Assembly: GCA_965240325.2 (NCBI GenBank)
Contig: OZ251241.1
Coordinates: 248,001-312,000, forward strand
Direction: 5' to 3'
Source: Rebecca billardiae RCC1528
Taxonomy: Eukaryota > Protista > Haptophyta
DNA length: 64,000 bases
The notes beneath the pieces are model-generated. The model worked only from the letters and a program-made list of their open reading frames with translations, was not told the DNA's origin and did no database searches. The position numbers and the translations under genes are program-made. Shown piece by piece: positions 24,104 through 35,002 of this stretch. Numbering within the stretch: the stretch's first letter is position 1; each line of letters starts with the position of its first letter.

Positions 24104-24198
<95 letters not shown>

Positions 24199-24365
24199 GC
24201 AGCCTGCTGTGGGCTGCAACATGTTCTACGACGACGAGAAAATCCCAACAAGGAGTGTCTGCATCATATAAGTATGCGCCTGCCGCATCCGCCATCCAGG
24301 CATTGGTCACGTACGCAAGGTCAAGGACACATATATATATATATATATATTATATAATATATATA

Positions 24366-24407
<42 letters not shown>

Positions 24408-24412
24408 ATATA
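24104..24412. repeat. Two (TA)n microsatellite tracts (24104-24196 pure; 24331-24412 imperfect)
   Basis: Direct reading. Confidence 0.97.
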
Positions 24413-24797
24413 TGCGCTGGCAGCTACTGAGTACTGGTGCATGCTGACGATCGATAGGCGCGCGTATAGCAGCTAAATAGCGCAGCGCCGCCAGTGGCAG
24501 TGCCGAGTGCGCGCGCTGCGCTGCACGCACGCATCAATTCGTCGCATCATCGTCGTCGTCGCGATGATGATCATCTGCATCATCATCGTCATCGCGCGTG
24601 ATCGTCAGCGCACGACCGAGTAGCACATGCACGCCGCGTCGAGTAAAACGGCACTGCTGCTGCGGCGGCGGCGGCGGCGCGCTGCCACGCCACTTTGTGG
24701 CCTGCGCCAGCGCGCGCGGCTCGGCATCGACGCCACGGGCGGGTTGCCCGGTTCGCGGTCGTCGGTCGGTTCAGCTTGCAGTCAGCGCCGCGCCTGG

Positions 24798-27700
24798 TCA
24801 TGGAAGGAAGCGCGCGGGCAGCTCCGAGCCGCCGCCGAGCGCCGAGGGGAAGCCCGCGCCCAGCGCACCCGCGGCGTCGTGCACGAGCTCGCACGCGCGC
24901 GCGACGCCGTCGCCGGGGCTCGGCTCGGAGTGCGCGAGCTCGGTGAGCGCGCGCGCCCACTCGGGCCGCGCGCGCGCCCAGCGCTCGTGCGCGTACGCGG
25001 GCTTGATGCAGCGCTCGAGCTGCAGCAAGGAGGCCGCGCAGAGGGCCAGCGCGCACCCGCCGCCGCCGCTCGAAGCCGCCTCGGCGCGCTCGTCGAGCGC
25101 GTCCTCGAGCGCGGTCACCCAGCGCTTCTGCGCCAGCTGCCACGACACCTTGGCCGCCTTCCAGGGCAGGGCCTCGTCCAGCGCGAGCACACAGCCCAGC
25201 GCGGCGCACACGGCGGAGGGGCGGCCGCGCGCGGCGGCGGCGGGCTTGGGCGCGGCCGCCGCGCGCGCGCCCGAGGCCGGCGGGGCGACGGCGGGCGAGA
25301 GCGAGCGCATCGCCCGGCCGGCGCTCGGCGGCGACTTTGGCGTCGAGGCGGGCGGCGCGGCGCGCTTGCTCGGCGGCGTGGGCGTCTTCTCCTCCGAGCG
25401 CGCGCGCTTCGCCTTGGGCGGCGACGCGGGCTTGGGCGCGCGCGCGCGTTTGCTCGCGCGCGCCGCGCGCGAGGCCGCGGGCGCGCTGCGCGGCTTGCGC
25501 GCGGGCTCGAAGTCGGAGGCGCTGCCTCCCTCGTCCTCGCTGCTCGCCTCCGCGCTCGACTCGGAGCCCGCCTCCTCCTCCTCCTCGGACGACTCGTCCT
25601 CCGACTCCGACTCCGACTCGGACTCATCGTCGTCGGAGGAGGAGGCGGCGGCGGCGCGTGCCTTGCGCCGCAGCGGCGGCTTGGCGCCGCCGCCGCCCTT
25701 GGGCGCCGCCACCGCCGGCGCCGCGCCGCCGTGCTCCGCGTTGGCGCCGAGCCGACGGATCTTGCTCGTGTCGCCGCGGCCGAGCGCGCCCCACTCCTCG
25801 ATCGAGCGCGGGTTGACGCGCTCCTTGACCGCGCGCGCCACCGCCCGCTCGCGCAGCTCGTACAGGGAGGTGCCGCCTTGCTCGGCACACCGCCACACCT
25901 CCATCTGGCCCTTGGGCGCGCGCACGCCGTGCGCGTTGCACAGCTGCTGCCCGAGCGTCTGGATCGAGCCGCACGACCTGCCGCGGCGCGCGGCCGACCA
26001 GCGCGCGCGCGCGCGCGAGGCGGGGAGACGGAGGGACGCGGCGCGGCGCGGTGAGCGGCAGCGCCGCACGGCGCGGCGCGCACGGCGCGCGCGGCGCGCG
26101 CGGGCGACACGCGGCGCGCGCGGGCGGCACGCGCGCGCGCGCGCACTCGGCTGGCGGCGCCACGCCCTTGGGCCGGGGTCCGCGCAGCGCGGCGCTGAAG
26201 GACGCGCTGTGCGTGTGGTCCCGAGCGTACACGCCCGGCTCCCACGCCACGCCCAGCTCGTACAGCGTCGTCTCCTTGGCCTGCTTGGGCGTGAGCGCGG
26301 ACGGGCGCGCCAGGCCGCGGGGTCCGACTGCGAGCGCGAGGCAGCCCTTGCCCAGGCGCAGCAGCGGGGGCGCGCTGGCCAGGCAGAAGGCGAAGAGCCC
26401 CTCGGGCTTGACCATGCCCGAGACGCCGCCCTTGGACCACGCCTGCTCCTTCTTCACCTCGCCGCTCTCCACGCGCGCCTTGAACTCCTTGGACTTCTGC
26501 CGCGCCTGCTCGCGCAGCGCGCCCAGGCTGCTCTGGGCCGCCTTGGCGCGCGCGCGCCCGCCCTCGTCCGCGTACTCGTCGATCGCCGCGCCGCGCTCGC
26601 GGCCCAGCGCGGCGCGGAACGCGGCGCGCTGCGCGCCCGTGCCCACGAAGCGGTGCGAGAAGGTGACGCGCAGCTTGTCCGGCACCGAGCGGCCACTCGC
26701 CTTGATGCGCGCGGACGTGCCGCCCACCGCCTCAAGTGTCTGGAACGTGAGGTTGCGCGCGGTCGGCGCCCAGAGGGCGGAGCCCTGGCGGTGCTCGCCC
26801 ACGCGCGGGTGCGCGGTGGTGCTCATGAAGAGCCAGCCGTGCGCGAGGTACTGCCCGGCCACCGCGTCCACCATGCGCACGCCCGCGCCCAGCCCCTGAT
26901 AGTCCGGGAGCAGCACAGTCCGGTGCTCGCGCCACGCCTTCACGCCGCACTTGTACGTGCCGGGGAAGGAGATGGCGCACACGCAGCCCACCGGCCGCGC
27001 GCCCCACGTGACCAGCCACAGGTGCGCGCCCTTCTGGCAGTCGTGGCTCAGGTAGTGGTGCTCGGCGAACAGCCCCCACAGCGCGCCCTTCTCGGCGCCG
27101 CGCGGCGACGCGACCAGCTCGACGGCCGGCGGCTCAAAGCTGAGCGCGGCGCGCGCGGCCGCGCCCTCGTCGGCGTGCAGCGCCGCGAGCGCGCCGTCCG
27201 CGAGGCGCTGCTCAGGCGCGAGCACCGCCAGCTGCCGCGTCAGCGTCGAGAACACCAGCTGCGGCTGCAGCGCCGCCACGAAGTCCTCGTGGCACGACGC
27301 GAGCACGAGGCCGCGCAGCCCGCGCGCGCGCGCGTACACGCCCACCGCGTGCGCGACACGCAGCGCGAGCGTGCGGTCGACGGCGGAGGTGAACTCGTCG
27401 ACCACGCCGCCGTCGCGCAGCTCGCGCGCCAGCGCCGCCTGGAACTGCTCGCCCGCCGAGAGCTGCGCGTACGCCAGCCCCCAGCAGCCCTCGGGCAGCA
27501 GCACGGCTGCGAGCGCGCGCGCGCCGCACGGAGCGCGCGCGCGACGCGCGGCGTGAGCCGGCATCCGCGGGGCGCGCGCGCGCGTGGCGCGCGCGCGCGG
27601 CGGCGGCGGCGGCGCGCACCTCGGAGCCGCTCGGCCGCCTGCTCCGCGCTCTCAAAGTGCTCGCGCACGGCCACGCCCTCGGCCCACGCGCCGGGCGCCG

Positions 27701-28997
27701 CGCCCGCGCCCGCCACTGGCGGCGCGCCCGCGACAGAGGCGGCCGCCGCGTCGGCCGCGCCTTCCCCGCGCCGCGCGAGCAGCGCGCGCAGCACGGTCGT
27801 CTTGCCCGAGCCGGACGGGCCGACAATCACCGCTGCGCGCACGAGCGCGCGAGAGCGCGCGCGCAGCCGGCAGAGAGGGCGGCAGAGAGGGCGGCGCGCG
27901 GGCGGGCGTGAGGGAGCAGCGCGCGCGGCGGCGCGCGCGGCGGCGCGCGCGGCGGCGGCGGCAGCCAGTCGAGCGCACGCGCGCGCACCGATGGGCGGGT
28001 TGGCGTCAAAGTGCTTGGCGGGCAGCGTCGGCGGCGTGAAGCTCGTCGCGCCGTCGAACTCGAAGTCGAAGGCCTCGGAGGCGCGCTCGGTCGCCTCGTC
28101 CATCGCCACGCGCGCCTTGAGCGCGCACCCCGCGCCGCCCGCCGCGGGCTCGGCATCGTGCACGGCCGAGACGCGCAGCGCGTTGGAGGAGAGGAGCGGC
28201 CAGCGCGCGCTCGCCGCGCTCGCCGCCGCCGCCGCGCCGGCCGCCGCCGCCTTCGCCTTGCCGTCCTTCCCCTTCGGCGCCGGCTGCGCGCCGCCCTGCA
28301 GCAGCCGGTGCTCGCCCTCCTCGCCCTCCGCGCGCGCCTCCCACGCGCTCTCGCACGCGACGCTGATCACGGGGCGGCGCGCAGCCGGGTCGGTGGGGTT
28401 GACGTGCAGCCGCAGCTCGGGGAGCACGAGCACGTGGTCCGGGCCGAGCCACGGCACGATGTCCGCGCACGGCGAGCACACGACCACGCGGCGCAGCCCC
28501 AGCTGGCGCACGAACCGACCGGTGGCGGCCGCCATCGCCTTGGCGGCCTCGCGGTTGACCCACGCGGTGAAGTCGTCGATCACGGCGTCTGTGCGCAGCT
28601 GCCGCGCCAGGAGCGCGCGCGCCTGCTCGCCGTTCGAGAGGCAGTGGAACGGGCGGTGCCACGCCGGGATCGAGCCGAGCCCGACCGCCGTCAGCCGGCG
28701 CTGCGCCTCCTCCGCATCGCCGAACTGCGAGACGATCGCCTTGCCCGCGTCCCACTCGACGCGCTCGGGCTCGCCAAAGTGCGCGCGCGCGAACCGCGTC
28801 TTGCCCGAGCCCGTGCCACCGAGCACGAGCAGCACGCCAAAGTCGGCGCCGCGCGCGAGCTCGGCCGGCAGCGGCGGCACGCCGCCCCCCGCGCCCGCGA
28901 GGGGCTTGCCGCCGCGCGAGGCGGGGGAGGGCGCGGTGCGCGGTGCGCGGGCGGTGGAGGCAGGCGTCGGCGCGCGCGGCGACGTCGAGCGCCCCAT
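24798..28997 (-). CDS. Tandem ABC-ATPase + GNAT acetyltransferase fusion with C-terminal RAMA-like and WHIM/WSD-like regions; introns 27833-27988, 27507-27619, 25978-26146 (about 1,253 aa)
   Basis: ABC1: GGTGSGKT/LSNGE/VIDDF. ABC2: GPSGSGKT/LSAGE/VVDEFTSAVDR/LASCHED. GNAT: FAEHHYL...RTVLLPDYQGLGAG...TTAHP. All three introns are GT-AG and the spliced length is a multiple of 3. Confidence 0.8.
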
Positions 28998-29615
28998 CGA
29001 GTTTCTCGGGCTGCGGGCGGGCGAGGCGAACTCGGCAGCGGGGCGGTCGGCCCGTCGTCGCGCGAGCAATCGTTGTTCGGTGTTGGCTTGTTGAGAGCGT
29101 GTTCCTTCCCGGCAGGGCCGCCCACCGGTCGACGCGCAGGCCGCACGCAGCGCTTCGGCTCCTTTGAATGAGCGAGTGGAGTGTCCGGTGACAAAGCACT
29201 CGTGTGTTGAGGTCGGTGAGGATGACCGTTTGGTTGTGAGAAACGTGGACACGTCGTGGTGGGCCGCGCTTTATAATTTGATGATGATGCTGGTCATGCT
29301 GGCCTTTTTCGAATTCGGATCACGCATGCGCCGATGCGCGGACGGTACACGGAATGATGATGGACGATTACACTGACTGTCAATCAATGCCGTTACTATG
29401 CCGATGACTCTGATGATGACTACGAGTGATGATGCTGCGACATTGATGATATGGATGCTGCCCCTACGAGCACTACTACACTCGTCCGGCGGCGCGCGCG
29501 GCAGTTACTGTCAGCGGGGACTTGGCACGCAGGAGGCCGGGCGCGGGCGCGCAGTGAGTGACTCGGCACAGCGCACGGCGGCCACCGTCCGGACGCCCGC
29601 GCGACGACGGCGCGC

Positions 29616-31694
29616 TCAGGTGATCACCGTGGGCCGGTCGCGCCCGGTGAAGTGCTCGATCTGCGCGAGCTCAGCCGCGGCGGCGAGCACGTCGGCGAGC
29701 GCGTCCTGCGCGTCGCGGTGCAGCGCGTCCGGCCCCGCCTCTGCGTGCTCGTACCGCTCGGCGTACAGCCGCACCGTGGCGCCGACCGAGCCGGTGCCCG
29801 AGAGGCGGAAGACAGCGCGCGCGCCGCCCTCGAACTTGCACACCAGCCCCTGGTTGGCCGAGGTGGTGCCGTCGACCGGGTCCGTGTACGCGAACGACTC
29901 GACCGCGCTCAGGGCCACGCGCCCACCCGCGAGGCTGGCGGGCGGCTGCTCGTCGCCCGCGGCCATCGCGCCGAGCCGCGCCATCATGCGCTTGGCCGCG
30001 TCCGCGTCCACCTCCTCGTAGTCGTGCCGCGAGTAGTAGTTCCGGCCGTACGTGGCCCAGTGCGCGCGCAGCACGTCGCCCACGCCCACGAGCTGCCCCT
30101 CCGGCGTGGCGCCGTTGTGGTGCGCGAGGATGGAGAGCCAGCACAGCACCGCCCACACGCCGTCCTTCTCGCGCACGTGCGACGAGCCGAGCCCGAACGA
30201 CTCCTCGCCGCAGATGAGCGGGTCGTACGCCGTGCCGCCGAGCTCGCGCGAGTCCATCAGGTTGCCGAAGAACTTCCAGCCCGACGGCGTCTCGAAGCAC
30301 GGGATGCCCAGCTGCGCCGCCACGCGGTCGACTGCGCCGCCGGTGGGCATCGAGCGCGCGACCGCGCGCAGCCCGCCCGCCGACGCAAACTGCGGGAGCA
30401 CGTGCGCGTGCGCCGCGACGATCGCGATCGAGTCGGACGGCGTGACGAACGTGCCGCGCCCGAGGATCATGTTGCGGTCGCCGTCGCCGTCGGTCGCCGC
30501 GCCAAAGTCGGGCGTGCGCAGCCCGTCGAGGCCGGGCAGCGGCGCCCCCGTCGTCGAGAGGCCGAGCAGCTTGACGAGCGCGGCCGCGTACGTCAGGTTG
30601 GGGTCCGGGTGTGCGCCGCCAAAGTCGGGGCGCGGGTCGCAGCGGAGCAGGCACTCGTCGGGCACGCCGAGCAGCTCGCCGAGCACGCGCTTCATGTACG
30701 GGCCAGCTGCGGCGGGCAGGAGAGGCGCGCGACGCGGGGCGGGCGCCGCGGGCAGCGCTCAGCAGCCGCGCGCTGCCGCCACAGCGCGCGCGCTCTGAGG
30801 GCGCGCGCGCGGCGGCGCGCGAAAAGACGCACCGGCGCCGTGCATCGCGTCGATGCGCAGGTCAAAGTCAGAGCGCGCGAGCAGCTTGCGCAGCGCGTCA
30901 AAGTCGAAGCACTTGCGCAGCACCTCGACGTACGTCTCCGCGCTGTCGACGACCTCGACCTCGAACGCGCCGCCCGACTGCAGCGCAAAGCGGTGCACGC
31001 CCGGCGCGGAGAGGTCGATGGGCGGGAGGTCGGCCTCGCGGTACGCGTCGATCGTCTTGGTGCGCGCGTACACCTCGTCCGTCACCGCCTCCGTCGCGGG
31101 CCCGCCGCTCGCCATGTTGAACTTGATGCCAAAGTCGTTGTCCGGGCCGCCCGGGTTGTGCGAGGCCGTGAGCACGATGCCGCAGTACGCGCACCCGCCC
31201 TCGCGCTCGCGCAGGAGGGCGGAGACGGCGGGCGTGGCGATCAGGCCGTTCACGCCCACCCATACGCGCGCAACGCCGTTCGCCGCGGCGAGGCGCATGA
31301 TCGCCTGCGCCGCCTCAGGCCCGTAGTAGCGGCCGTCGCCGCCGACCACGATCGTCGAGCCGCGCAGCTCGTCCGCAGGGAGCACGTCGAAGAAGGACTG
31401 GACGAGGTTGGCGACGTAGTGCGGCTGCATGAAGACCGACGTGCGCTTGCGCACGCCCGACGTGCCCGGCTTCTGCCCCTCGATCGGCGACGTCGGCACG
31501 GTGCGCTCGGCGACGGTGTCGGCCGCCGCCGCCGCCATCGACGCGCCGCCGCGCAGCGCGCGCGGGAGCGGGCCGAGCGGGCGGCGCGCGCCGAGCGCGA
31601 CGGAGACAACCGAGCTCGTGGGCAGCGCGCGCACGGCGGCGCTCGCCGCCGCCGCCGTCGTCGCCGCGAGCAGGAGGCGCACGGCCGCGCGCAT
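29616..31694 (-). CDS. PGM: Phosphoglucomutase with N-terminal signal/transit extension; intron 30707-30832
   Basis: GQKPGTSG, TASHNPGG (phospho-Ser), DGDGDRN (metal loop), CGEESFG, C-terminal PTVIT*. Confidence 0.95.
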
Positions 31695-31985
31695 CGCGCC
31701 GCGCTTGCTGCTTGCCGCCGCTGATGACGCGTGTGGACTGATGACGCGCGTCCGAGCAACAAGGGCACAAGGCTGCCGGGCAGAAATCAAATTGCCGATT
31801 TGGCGGGGACGAAATCCCTCCAATCCGACGAAGCACGGGCTGTGCATTTTTTTTCTGCTCGGACTTGGTCACTTGGACCAGCAAAAGGCGCCAAGTCCAC
31901 TTTCTCCCAGCAGCGCGGCCGCCGCGCTCTGCTCGGTGGACGGCGTCTCCGGCCGCGCGCTTGCGTGGCGCGGCGGCAGCGGCGG

Positions 31986-34138
31986 ATGAACCACCTGCCG
32001 CGCGTGCCCACCGGCGTGCGGCAGAGCTCGGCATCGCGCGACACCACCGAGCTGCTGCTGGCCACGGACAATGAGCCGGGCGCCGAGCGCGACGCGATGG
32101 GCGGCGGCGGCGGCGGCGCGTCCAACGGCGCGCCCCACGGCGGCGGCGGCGCCGACGGGCGCGAGCCGCCGGCGGAGCACTTTGCGCTCGAGGCGGAGGT
32201 GAATCGGGAGCAGTGGGAGGTGATGGCGGACCTCGACCTCTTCTTCACGCGCGTATACGGCTACTACCGCGAGCGCGGGCTGCGGTGCATCCTGCTGTCG
32301 CGCACGATGTCGCTGCTCATGCTGCTCTTCACGCTGCTCGCGTCGTACGCGGTGGCCGAGCTGGTGAACTGGCACGACCTGCTGTACGAGTGCAACGACG
32401 AGACGAGCTGCCTGCAGGCGCGCGCCGCGCCGCGCCGCGCCGCCGCGCGGCCGCGGCCGCGCGCGCGCGCGCGCGACTCGGCCGCGCGCCCAGCTGATCG
32501 CAGCGCGGCCGCCGCCTCGCCCCGCGCGCAGGTGACGCTGCTGCGGCCGGAGCGCTCGGGCCCGTCCTTCTTCATGAGCGTGTACGTCCTCCTCTTCTCG
32601 GTGTACCTCGTGTGGCAGCTCACGCACCTCGTCACCGAGGCGCGCTGCCTGCTCGAGATCCGCGCCTTCTACGAGCACAAGCTCGGCCTGGACGACGAGG
32701 CGCTGCAGGCGGTGGGCTGGGACGAGGTGGTGCGCAGGCTGGTGCGGCACCAGGCGAACTCGAAGTTCTGCATCGTCAAGGCGGCGCTCGACCCGCTCGA
32801 CGTCGCGATGCGCGTGATGCGCAAGGAGAACTGGCTGGTGGCTCTGCTCGACGCGCGGCTGCTGCCGCTGCAGCTGCAGCTGCCGCTGCTCGGCAGCCGC
32901 ACGCTGCTCACGAAGACGCTCGAGTGGAACCTGTACACCGTGCTCGTGCGCGCGCGCGCGCGCGCGCGCGCAGGGCGCGCGCCGCGAGGAGCACGCGCAG
33001 GCGCGCGCCGTCGCGCGCGCGCGCTCATCCCCGCCCGCGCCGCGCCGCGCGCCGCGCCCGCGCCGCGCCCGCGCCGCGCCCGCGCCGCGCCCGCGCGCAG
33101 CTGGACGGCATGTACGACCAGCGCTTCCGCGTGCGGCGCGCGTTCGTGACGGACGTGGGCGCGCTGCAGCGGCGGTTCGTGATCGCGGGCGCGCTCAACT
33201 TCGCGCTGCTCCCCTTCATCGCGCTCTTCATGGCCGTGTTCTTCTTCCTCAAGCACGCGGAGGAGTTCCACCGCCACCCGGGCTCGATCGGCGCGCGCTC
33301 CTACTCCCCGCACGCGCTCTGGCTGTTCCGCGAGTACAACGAGCTGCCGCACGTGTTCGAGGCGCGGATCGACGCGTCGTACGCCCACGCGCAGAAGTAC
33401 GTCGACGCGTTCCCCGCGCGCGAGACGGCGATCGTCGCGCGGCTGTTCACGTTTGTGTTTGGCGCGTTTGCGGCCGCGGCGCTGCTGCTCTCCGTGCTCA
33501 ACCAGGACGTGCTGATCCACTACCGCTGGCCGAGGCACGAGGGCGGGCCGAACCTGCTGTGGTACCTCGCGCTCTTCTCGACCGCGCTCGCCGTCTCGCG
33601 CTCGTACGGCGCCGAGCCCCCCGCCGGCTCCGCCGAGCACCTGCTGCGCCGCGCGGCGACGTGCACGCACTACCTGCCGCCCGCGTGGCACGGGCGCGCA
33701 CACCTGCGCTCGGTGTACGCCGCCTTCTGCGCGCTCTTCGAGTACAAGCTGCTGCTCTTCCTCGCGGAGGTGGCGTCGTGCGTGTTCACGCCGTACACGC
33801 TCGCGTTCGCGCTGCCGCGCGCCGCGCCCGCCATCGTCGACTTCGTCGCGCGGCACACGGTGCACGTCGAGGGCATTGGCGACGTGTGCGCGCACGCGAC
33901 GCTCACGCCGCAGCCCGCACCCGGCGCGGCGCACGCCGACGGCGGCGGCGGCGGCGCGCGCGCTGAGGGCGTGGGCAAGGTGGAGGCGTCGCTGCTCTCG
34001 TTCGCGGCGCACCACCCCACGTGGCACTCGCACTCGGCGGACGCGCTGCTCGCGCAGCTCGGCGCGCCCGCGCTGCAAGCGCAGCCGCCGGGCGCGGCGG
34101 CGCCGCCGCCGCTGCCGAGCGCCGCCGCCGCCGCGCAC

Positions 34139-34178
<40 letters not shown>

Positions 34179-35002
34179 GCGCCGCGCCCGTGTCCTCGGG
34201 CAGCTGCGCCATCTCCGCGTCCAACCTCGTGCTCGCGCAGCTCGAGGGGCACGCCGCGCACGCCGCGGCCGCGTGCGGCGGCTCGCGGCTGCTGCGCGGC
34301 TCCCTGAGCGCCGAGCCGTCACACAGCTCGTCTGTGCTCGCGCCCGGCTGCGCCGGAGGCTGGCTCGGCGGCGCGGCGGCGCCGCTCGCGTTCCCCACGC
34401 CGCCCGGCGCCGTGTGCGCCACGCGCGCGGGCTGTACGCCGTGCGCGCCGTGCGGCAGCGCCGGCCTGCGCACGTCGACGCAGCAGCTGCGCGCCGTGCG
34501 CGAGGCGGACGGCTGCGCGGACGAAGAGCCCGCCTCGCCCGCGCACCACCCGCAGCGTGACGCGCCGCCCGCCGCGCCGCACCCGGCCGAGGGCGTCGAG
34601 GGCGCGGCGCCGGCGCTGGCGGCGCCCGGCGCGAGCGTGCCCTCGCCGCTCGGCGCTGAGCTGGCGGCCTCGGCGGCCGCGGCCGCCGAGGGCACGCTGC
34701 CGCCCGCGCGCGCCGCGGCGGCCAGCGCGGCGGGCGCGCCGCCGCTGCCGCCCGCGCCGCTGCACTCGTCGATCGGTGATCTCGCCGCGCTTGCGGGCGC
34801 GGCTTCGGCTGTGGGTGGCGGCCTCGTCGCGCCGCTCCCCGGGCTGCCCGCCGAGGCGTCGGTCGAGCTCTCCGAGCTGGCCGCGCTCACGGGCGAGCTG
34901 GGCGAGGCCGGGCTGGCGGCCGGCGCCGCCTCGCGCCGCGGGCTGCTGATGACGCAGGTGTTGTTCGCGCACCTCGACCAGCAGCAGGCGGCGTCGCGCT
35001 AG
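31986..35002 (+). CDS. ATG9: Autophagy-related protein 9; introns 32418-32531 (GC-AG) and 32946-33100
   Basis: DLDLFFTRVYGYY.ERGL.CI, MRKENWLVAL, FREYNELPHVFEARI, TVHVEGIGDVC. Confidence 0.92.

Follow-up and report, generated by a model that had tools for sequence, protein, structure and literature searches.

The locus described here raises the question of how a protein with the build of a phage enzyme came to be encoded in the genome of a haptophyte, and what it might do there. In the window, a stretch of 64,000 nucleotides (nt) from Rebecca billardiae RCC1528 (GenBank assembly GCA_965240325.2, contig OZ251241.1, positions 248,001 to 312,000), a gene on the minus strand at 24798-28997 yields, upon removal of three GT-AG introns, a single open reading frame (ORF) with a coding sequence of 3,762 nt and a product of 1,253 amino acids (aa), in which the terminal TGA is the sole stop. 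This gene model, first put forward in an earlier note on this DNA, was reproduced exactly, and the parts that the note had read from the product are likewise there: two ATP-binding cassette (ABC) ATPase modules, a GCN5-related N-acetyltransferase (GNAT) domain, an acidic and basic low-complexity stretch, and a helical C-terminal part. We find that the protein almost certainly belongs to the ABC-ATPase–GNAT family and is of phage ancestry. As the best overall explanation of its sequence features we propose, while according it slightly less than an even chance, the ATP-gated acylation of nucleic-acid bases by a phage-derived nuclear enzyme.

A phage-type ABC-ATPase–GNAT core

A hidden Markov model (HMM) built from 29 homologues matches the protein twice, with its ABC part alone at aa 50-213 (E = 1.5e-47) and with its ABC and GNAT parts together at aa 293-697 (E = 7e-81). 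The second match is collinear with positions 7-353 of the model, the ABC module being followed directly by the family GNAT domain. Both halves are also matched (E = 1.5e-42 and 6.9e-47) by the PHROG family phrog_11143, a 357-position ABC+GNAT family of unknown function. Pfam recovers P-loop/ABC_tran on the core and, weakly, Acetyltransf_1 (E = 1.2e-4) as well as Acetyltransf_7 on the GNAT, and no NCBIfam or PADLOC family matched the pieces of the protein. With tblastn, 47 GenBank phage records were matched, including Aeromonas PX29-like, Vibrio, Arthrobacter, Gordonia, Burkholderia phiE255, Porphyromonas, Nonlabens, Tenacibaculum pT24 and Thomasclavelia phages, and a library of 1.84 billion proteins holds 1,233 relatives at E<=1e-3. 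A word-index protein search with exons 1-2, which was swamped by low-complexity words, gave one match (P0191). Among the named members of the family are proteins of Tenacibaculum phage pT24 and Aeromonas phage PX29, gp29 of Burkholderia phage phiE255 and gene 2 of a Gordonia phage.

The family is marked in its ABC part by FD.xFDG ahead of the Walker A motif, LSxGE, DEFTSxVDR and SCH.D, and in its GNAT part by HHYL, WREHRTVVLPDYQGLGxG, TAHPR, W.PT.KN and R.CYSHEY.G. Every family invariant of the second ABC module and of the GNAT is kept in the haptophyte protein, as seen in the family alignments, and the motifs quoted in the earlier note (LSNGEQ, VVDEFTSAVDR, SCHED, HHYL, PDYQGLGAG, TTAHP and SALW) were all found. 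Its assignment of the core to the phage-type ABC-ATPase–GNAT proteins was thus borne out by the phrog_11143 and family HMM matches and by the retained invariants. The converse prospect that the best matches might be ordinary ABCF- or NAT10-type proteins did not materialize: its closest relatives are, without exception, ABC–GNAT proteins, and NAT10 is reached at motif A alone (E = 0.39). A soluble tandem ABC protein of the ABCF/ABCE kind was likewise rejected as a candidate, no NCBIfam family of this sort passing.

The second unit of the protein (aa 293-697) thus resembles the phage enzymes over the whole of their ~357-position profile, inclusive of the N-terminal FD.xFDG, and the closest short members are 41-46% identical to it. 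Unlike them, with their single ABC module per chain and their length of about 350-420 aa, it has two such modules and a 550-aa tail with an acidic run, motifs resembling nuclear localization signals (NLS) and helical regions; moreover, it lacks the ParB partner and phage context, and its gene carries three spliceosomal introns. Iyer, Zhang, Burroughs and Aravind (NAR 2013) predicted that the family makes an uncharacterised acyl modification of DNA bases, as recounted in section 3.4.7 of PMC7824862. With the family and its predicted role already published in 2013 and 2021, the earlier note went too far in speaking of a new system. What is new here, so far as the sequences tell, is a eukaryote-type clade characterized by a tandem architecture with a degenerate N-terminal ABC module and by the absence of the ParB partner.

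A probable asymmetric pair of ABC modules

The first ABC module (28359..28850, minus strand; aa 50-213) is degenerate. It retains a Walker A motif, GGTGSGKT, and the signature LSNGEQ, and its Walker B, VIDDF, has Asp142 in place of the catalytic Glu, while Cys177 stands in place of the H-loop His. The second module is canonical, with Walker A GPSGSGKT, signature LSAGEQ, Walker B VVDEF (Glu445), D-loop SAVD and H-loop SCH (His480), and keeps all the invariant columns of the ABC alignment (A1). No transmembrane segment was detected in the 1,253 aa (maximum Kyte-Doolittle mean over 19 residues, 1.42), in agreement with the earlier description of two soluble modules, both of which the HMM finds.

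The degeneracy of module 1 follows a pattern of the eukaryotic clade described below. Among the first-unit modules of that clade, the catalytic Glu is present in 10/32 and the H-loop His in 12/32, and the signature Ser and Gly are retained in 32/32. In the second-unit modules the Glu and the His are each found in 31/33 and the signature Gly in 26/33. The single units of phages and prokaryotes have the Glu in 217/218 and the His in 205/218. Immediately after module 1, the haptophyte protein has the segment 'RRPVISVACESAW', which is the counterpart of the first strand at the start of the family GNAT. In a tree of the ABC modules alone, all the second-unit modules and 19/32 of the first-unit modules fall in one 64-tip clade (support 0.934). 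This tree and the GNAT-start remnant indicate that an internal duplication gave rise to the tandem form and that the first GNAT was lost.

CFTR and TAP1/2 are familiar examples of ABC proteins with an asymmetric pair of modules, in which one of the two nucleotide-binding sites is degenerate. Like these, the haptophyte protein has one module without the catalytic Glu and H-loop His, yet with an intact Walker A and a perfect signature, alongside a canonical one; unlike them, it is soluble, lacks a transmembrane domain and is fused to an acyltransferase, such that the likeness is one of analogy. We consider it probable that the two modules form an asymmetric pair within a single chain, i.e. a pseudo-heterodimer. 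By extension from what is known of ABC proteins, module 1 is predicted to pair with module 2, and the Walker A, Walker B and H-loop of module 2 together with the signature of module 1 would then make up one competent ATP site, the other site being degenerate.

A single eukaryotic clade nested among viral sequences

We surveyed the architectures of the 150 best library representatives together with the window protein, and found the tandem arrangement, in which an ABC-only module precedes a full ABC–GNAT unit, in 33 proteins. It was found in none of the 80 prokaryote-genome loci and in none of the 80 IMG/VR viral loci, all 160 of which encode single units. The tandem proteins come from eukaryotes, namely dinoflagellates, a foraminifer and MMETSP protists, and their sources include Pelagodinium beii (EP00441_P034839), Gymnodinium smaydae (EP00928_P056679), Nonionella stella (EP01083_P097642), MMETSP transcripts and an intron-rich gene that extends across 40 kb in the Symbiodinium assembly GCA_905221605.1. 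In a tree of the full units, all 33 tandem proteins form one clade (FastTree support 0.976), which is recovered by IQ-TREE under LG+G4 with 105 rows (ultrafast bootstrap 96, SH-aLRT 77.7) and again by FastTree upon addition of the 80 viral loci (0.957). With the tree rooted on a distant prokaryote, a root that is assumed, the tandem clade adjoins 12-13 short sequences of metagenomic, viral or metagenome-assembled-genome origin and falls within a larger group of 175 tips, of which 55 are IMG/VR contigs and no more than 3 are loci from prokaryote genomes.

Read most simply, these trees would point to one origin, from a phage or prophage, possibly with transfers between eukaryotes. The comparison with phage and bacterial homologues, which the earlier note had called for, thus places the eukaryotic copies among viral sequences. 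Its suggestion of lateral acquisition holds in this respect and fails in another, for the acquisition is not private to this genome and pertains to a eukaryote-wide tandem clade. An intermediate stage in giant viruses was considered and finds no support: the BFVD gave only generic giant-virus GNATs, and the tandem form is missing from all 80 IMG/VR loci.

The haptophyte protein shares with the other tandem proteins its architecture, its clade and the degeneracy of its first module; the nearest of them, P0041 and P0001, are 43-45% identical to it and also share the extension that follows the GNAT. It differs from those that carry accessory domains: among 56 clade members, two have a Tudor domain of the PTM/DIR17 type (P0043 and P0051, the latter ending in it), one a PHD finger, one a Strawberry-notch (SBNO) helicase and two a SpoU RNA methylase, most having none recognisable, and the haptophyte protein has none of these and ends in an unclassified helical region of its own. 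Accessory fusions were seen in P0044 of Pelagodinium beii (2,734 aa) and P0094 (1,262 aa), including the Strawberry-notch helicase and, in P0094, the SpoU methylase. On the contig that carries P0043 (L002), an ORF with a PHD finger lies just downstream and may be a further exon of that gene.

Gene neighborhoods in phages and prokaryotes

Contextual information was collected from 80 prokaryote-genome loci and 7 GenBank phage loci. In 71/87 of these, a ParB_N protein of about 200 aa is encoded immediately upstream on the same strand; downstream lie genes for the terminase large subunit (37 loci) and the portal protein. We also found seven fusions of the form ParB_N–ABC–GNAT (P0138, P0092, P0128, P0070, P0033, P0120 and P0166; ParB HMM E-values from 1e-19 to 9e-57), which appear to tie the ParB partner functionally to the ABC–GNAT enzyme. 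In reported experiments, phage enzymes of a different DNA base-modifying class were activated by ParB-like partners, and the genes for these enzymes likewise co-occur with those for terminases (PMC13229309). A subclass of phage loci lacks ParB, and the loci that resemble the window protein most closely belong to it; its neighbors code for a primase, a DnaB-like helicase, a DNA polymerase, dUTPase, dCMP deaminase, GMP reductase/IMPDH and a PNKP-type phosphatase. Hence, this context of ParB, terminase and nucleotide-metabolism neighbors favors DNA, or possibly its precursors, as the substrate of the phage enzymes.

In three phages, Gordonia phage BiggityBass, Burkholderia phage phiE255 and a Porphyromonas phage, the ABC–GNAT gene is followed by one for a Formyl_trans_N protein. 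In BiggityBass this is gene 3 (L004:1823-2470), annotated as a 'tRNA-methyltransferase'; the formyltransferase partners elsewhere are gp30 of L003 and the last gene of L008. In the Mu-like phiE255 and in the Porphyromonas phage, the ABC–GNAT/formyltransferase pair is placed after the tail genes, the position that mom occupies in Mu. The recurrence of this pair hints at a two-step modification.

The GNAT domain and its relation to Mom

The GNAT domain (26638..27126, minus strand; aa 535-697) was delimited by a family alignment (A3), an AlphaFold2 model and Foldseek, besides the Pfam match. It has the family invariants H558, Y559, R603, V605, P608, Q611, G612 and W653, the near-invariants R600, G614, H640-P641, R647 and H692, and a motif of the type that binds the CoA pyrophosphate, YQGLGAG. 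The conserved Q-G-x-G-x-G loop suggests a donor of the CoA type. The AlphaFold2 model of the domain, obtained with an alignment of 45 sequences, is of good quality (predicted local distance difference test, pLDDT, 89; predicted template modelling score 0.82). Foldseek comparison of this model with the PDB retrieved the generic GNAT fold only, with TM-scores of 0.5-0.57 and 9-13% identity, the matches including a Desulfovibrio GNAT, GCN5/PCAF, RimI, Naa50, NatD, TmcA (2zpa, ranks 12 and 16) and Kre33 (5jpq_i, rank 47). The structure search with this domain upheld the fold named in the earlier note and turned up no specific relative among modifiers of nucleic acids. The family profile reaches PDB sequences only at E>=0.009, and these matches are confined to motif A.

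The note had further linked the GNAT to Mom-like nucleic-acid acylation. Mom of phage Mu is a GNAT-fold enzyme that moves glycine from Gly-tRNA(Gly) to the N6 of adenine in double-stranded DNA (PMC13219725). Its structure, 8BV8, which is in the PDB copy searched, is absent from the profile matches at E<=10 and from the Foldseek top 50; hhalign against Mu Mom gives a probability of 0.2%; and in a structure search of the BFVD, Mom ranks 49th (TM-score 0.52), behind family members such as that of Leptospira phage LE4 and generic giant-virus GNATs. A specific relationship is therefore rejected by all four comparisons, and the link with Mom is one of analogy through membership in the GNAT superfamily. 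Both have been taken as phage modifiers that protect DNA, and in Mu-like phiE255 and the Porphyromonas phage their genes share a location, whereas Mom has no ATPase module and shows no specific sequence or structure kinship with the present family. Because Mom draws on Gly-tRNA (PMC13219725) and a formyltransferase gene recurs beside the ABC–GNAT genes, the donor may instead be of the aminoacyl type.

The C-terminal tail

The GNAT is followed by a helical extension to about aa 790, which is common to P0041, P0046 and P0186. A conserved mid-region (25749..26559, minus strand; aa 724-937) spans intron 3 and is helical, with no named family; it aligns with P0051 by BLASTP at E = 2.6e-9, and the helices modeled in aa 862-940 have pLDDT values of 62-71. 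Thereafter come an acidic Ser/Asp/Glu run read from the sequence (25506..25643, minus strand; aa 973-1018), a basic Lys/Arg/Pro/Ser-rich run found by a regular-expression scan (25335..25502, minus strand; aa 1020-1075), with two monopartite NLS-type K-R-A-R motifs (aa 1037 and 1051) and S/T-P-x-K-like motifs, and a C-terminal helical region (24840..25217, minus strand; aa 1115-1240), for which AlphaFold2 gives five helices at pLDDT below 55. No Pfam family matches the tail, even at E<=10, and a single-sequence AlphaFold2 model of it is unusable (pLDDT 47). On these features, nuclear targeting of the protein is a reasonable inference. The more specific contention of the earlier note, that the gene had gained chromatin-targeting domains, could not be sustained, as it comes down to the NLS-like motifs and the acidic run. 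A resemblance of the C-terminal pattern 'W...W...LxLxxxxLLQLERCI' to WHIM/WSD motifs likewise finds no backing in Pfam at that threshold, and is not claimed here.

Gene structure and genomic setting

The gene comprises four exons on the minus strand (28997-27989, 27832-27620, 27506-26147 and 25977-24798). Exon 1 (27989..28997; aa 1-336) encodes, after the start codon, a low-complexity N-terminal stretch, then ABC module 1 and the remnant of the GNAT start and, beyond a linker, the FDFEFDG motif from the N-terminal part of unit 2; it is supported by the family HMM at aa 50-213 and aa 293-355. Exon 2 (27620..27832; 213 nt) encodes the Walker A of module 2 (aa 341-348) and the part that follows it, exon 3 (26147..27506) the remainder of that module, the GNAT and the conserved extension, and exon 4 (24798..25977; aa 862-1253 and the TGA) the end of the mid-region, the acidic and NLS-like basic runs and the C-terminal helical region. 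The extended donor GTGCGCGC is common to the three introns, which consist mostly of (GC)n-like low-complexity sequence: intron 1 (27833..27988; 156 nt, 86% GC, (GC)n-rich) and intron 2 (27507..27619; 113 nt, 90% GC) end in CAG, and intron 3 (25978..26146; 169 nt, 90% GC) in GGCAG. Splicing of intron 1 gives the junction 'PPI|AVIVGPSGSGKT', which re-creates the Walker A context collinearly with the family alignment, and that of intron 2 gives 'AERLR|AVLLPEGCWGLAYAQLSAGEQ', which re-creates the stretch ahead of the signature motif in the family form 'RL.AV.L......W...Y..LS.GE'; introns 1 and 2 are thus confirmed by collinearity with the aligned family sequences. Intron 3 lies where conservation is poor, and its junction is the least secure of the three. 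It is supported by its GT-AG ends, the shared donor motif and restoration of the frame, and the relative P0051 aligns collinearly across it. Retention of intron 1 or of intron 3 would give a stop-free read-through; intron 1 is the only one divisible by three, and its retention alone keeps the downstream frame.

The sequence here is 72-78% GC. On the opposite strand a stop-free ORF of 1,498 aa (24598-29094, plus strand) spans the whole gene, as a by-product of a GC content of 78% and of a GC content at third codon positions (GC3) of 0.965. Because the antisense strand holds such a spurious frame, the length of an ORF is no evidence in sequence of this kind, and the reality of the gene is to be judged from homology, which argues for it.

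The gene is neighbored by one for phosphoglucomutase (PGM; 29616-31847, minus strand), present as two ORF pieces about 63 nt apart, and by one for an ATG9 homologue (32612-35002, plus strand; Pfam E = 4e-81). The gap within PGM is a short intron, the donor of which cannot be placed as a plain GT. The best match of the PGM other than to itself is 70% identical (JGI), and the named matches, at 56-57% identity, are to the ochrophyte stramenopiles Phaeothamnion and Discosporangium; exact searches with ten ORFs of the window returned a Logan contig and nothing else. The GC3 of the gene (0.965) is close to that of PGM and ATG9 (0.975 and 0.981). An independent Logan contig from ERR14847151 (L092) is 99.5% identical to 28221-32446 and covers PGM together with the first 259 codons of the gene; it has a cluster of indels near 31853-31874 and, within the first 777 nt of the gene, two substitutions relative to the window, of which one or both alter the protein sequence, and is a strain or haplotype variant of the same species. 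The PGM and ATG9 flanks, the host-like GC3 and the independent contig evidently mark it as a long-resident nuclear gene, and neither contamination nor insertion of a virus nor a transfer of recent date accounts for it. The earlier view that it had acquired introns of the host type accords with its three GT-AG introns, host codon usage and ordinary nuclear neighbors. The 64 kb hold no ParB gene in six-frame translation, no second copy of the family and no Rfam match. Two dinucleotide microsatellites, a perfect (TA)46 at 24104-24196 and (AT)43 at 24331-24413, follow the stop codon at a distance of 400-700 nt; the intergenic sequence around them is otherwise very rich in GC.

Proposed function and its alternatives

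We propose that the protein is a soluble enzyme, probably located in the nucleus, whose core derives from the ABC-ATPase–GNAT unit of phages. In phages and prophages, that unit has about 370 aa, with one ABC module and one GNAT, and is presumed to act as a homodimer powered by ATP, in many cases together with a partner of the ParB type. Among the eukaryotes it would have been duplicated in tandem, the first copy losing its GNAT, catalytic Glu and H-loop His and keeping its signature, such that the two ATP sites and two GNATs presumed for the phage homodimer would have been reduced to one active ATP site and one GNAT, both on the same chain. The binding of ATP would close the two modules on a nucleic-acid substrate, upon which the GNAT would move an acyl group from a donor of the acyl-CoA type to the exocyclic amine of a base; hydrolysis of ATP would then reset the enzyme, and the tail, through its NLS-like motifs, acidic run and helical modules, would bring it to the nucleus and to its partners. 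That the protist enzyme acylates nucleic-acid bases in the nucleus is a tentative proposition, to which we give not quite an even chance. The phage context would favor DNA over RNA as the substrate; as a claim in its own right, that the substrate is DNA rather than RNA strikes us as rather doubtful.

Several observations weigh against this proposal. A literature search found no biochemical characterisation and no demonstrated activity for any member of the ABC–GNAT family. The modeled GNAT displays no specific affinity to a GNAT that modifies nucleic acids, its best structural matches being generic, and its donor might, like that of Mom, be an aminoacyl-tRNA in place of an acyl-CoA. The ParB partner is found neither in the window nor fused in any eukaryotic member of the clade, and the tail has no recognisable chromatin domain. 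The SpoU methylase domains of two clade members would point to RNA. Finally, the gene is known here from genomic sequence alone, with intron 3 as its weakest junction.

The methylase fusions, of which P0094 is an example, bring up the first alternative, an ATP-dependent acetyltransferase of tRNA or rRNA that would be a functional analogue of TmcA/NAT10, its ABC pair acting on RNA or the ribosome in the manner of ABCF/ABCE. TmcA and NAT10 (Kre33) are ATP-dependent RNA cytidine N4-acetyltransferases in which a P-loop ATPase is likewise fused to a GNAT, the ATPase presenting the base to the GNAT, and both TmcA and Kre33 figure in the Foldseek ranking given above. The sequence profile of the ABC part, for its part, finds ABCF (ExpZ) and ABCE1/RLI among its PDB matches, along with transporters and UvrA. 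However, the ATPase of TmcA/NAT10 is of the helicase type, whereas that of the window protein is an ABC module; the latter has neither DUF1726 nor a tRNA-binding domain by Pfam, and its sequence likeness to NAT10 is the marginal one at motif A. The phage neighborhoods also speak for DNA, with ParB adjacent or fused, terminase, primase and dUTPase/dCMP deaminase, and the one neighbor whose annotation evoked tRNA, that in the Gordonia phage, is really a Formyl_trans_N protein. We regard an RNA acetyltransferase as unlikely.

Of similarly small likelihood, in our estimation, is a protein acetyltransferase directed in the protist at chromatin proteins such as histones, and in phages at host or packaging proteins, with the ABC pair serving as an ATP-gated clamp or regulator. 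The top Foldseek matches, GCN5/PCAF, RimI, Naa50 and NatD, are all protein acetyltransferases, and the Tudor and PHD readers and the SBNO helicase of the relatives are typical companions of histone modifiers; moreover, phage GNATs that acetylate host proteins are known, Rac being an instance given in PMC7824862. Against this, the structural matches are generic (TM-score about 0.5, 9-12% identity), the family invariants HHY, REHR, TAHP, W653 and H692 differ from those of the GCN5 or NAT enzymes, and the association with ParB, terminase and nucleotide metabolism argues for DNA.

That association could itself be taken to indicate a free nucleotide or other small molecule as the substrate, for example a (deoxy)nucleotide whose amino group would be acylated before incorporation, as in pre-replicative phage pathways. 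The subclass of loci closest to the eukaryotic clade does adjoin genes for dUTPase, dCMP deaminase, GMP reductase/IMPDH and the PNKP-type phosphatase, and the formyltransferase associated in three unrelated phages is of the PurN/Fmt type. Nevertheless, an ABC ATPase module and fusion or adjacency to ParB are hallmarks of work on macromolecules, and a long nuclear-type tail and fusions to reader domains are ill-suited to a metabolic enzyme; we consider this alternative highly improbable. A decaying, non-functional relic or an assembly contaminant, as might be supposed from the missing catalytic residues of module 1, from the purely genomic record of the gene and from the (GC)n low complexity of its introns and linkers, is barely credible given the intact ORF of 1,253 aa, the full set of invariants in module 2 and the GNAT, the clade-wide pattern of loss in module 1 with 100% retention of the signature, the GC3 equal to that of host genes, the flanking PGM and ATG9, and the 99.5%-identical Logan contig that joins the 5' end to PGM.

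Conclusions

Base acylation in the nucleus thus remains our preferred reading, and a further conjecture, fairly unlikely in our view, may be built upon it. The tandem ABC–ABC–GNAT enzymes might write an as yet undetected mark derived from acyl or aminoacyl groups on the bases of nuclear DNA in dinoflagellates, foraminifera and other marine protists, including the present organism. The phage system would in this case have been inherited once and would now be single-chain and ParB-independent, and the mark would be coupled to chromatin via modules of the Tudor, PHD or SBNO type or via lineage-specific tails. To our knowledge, base modifications of the acyl type have not been described for the nuclear DNA of any eukaryote.

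The prediction for the phage ABC–GNAT enzymes dates from 2013; an intact, long-resident and intron-bearing version is now shown in protist nuclei, and the protist versions form one clade with a distinctive asymmetric ABC design in a single chain. The target of the acylation is now directly testable, in phages with and without ParB as well as in protists, and E445, H480, H558/Y559, R603 and Q611 are offered as residues for mutation. The TET/JBP base modification of eukaryotes has its origin in phages. If the target of the tandem enzymes is DNA, they would provide a parallel to that origin and a new class of eukaryotic epigenetic mark; if it is RNA or protein, they would represent a new type of ATP-gated acetyltransferase.

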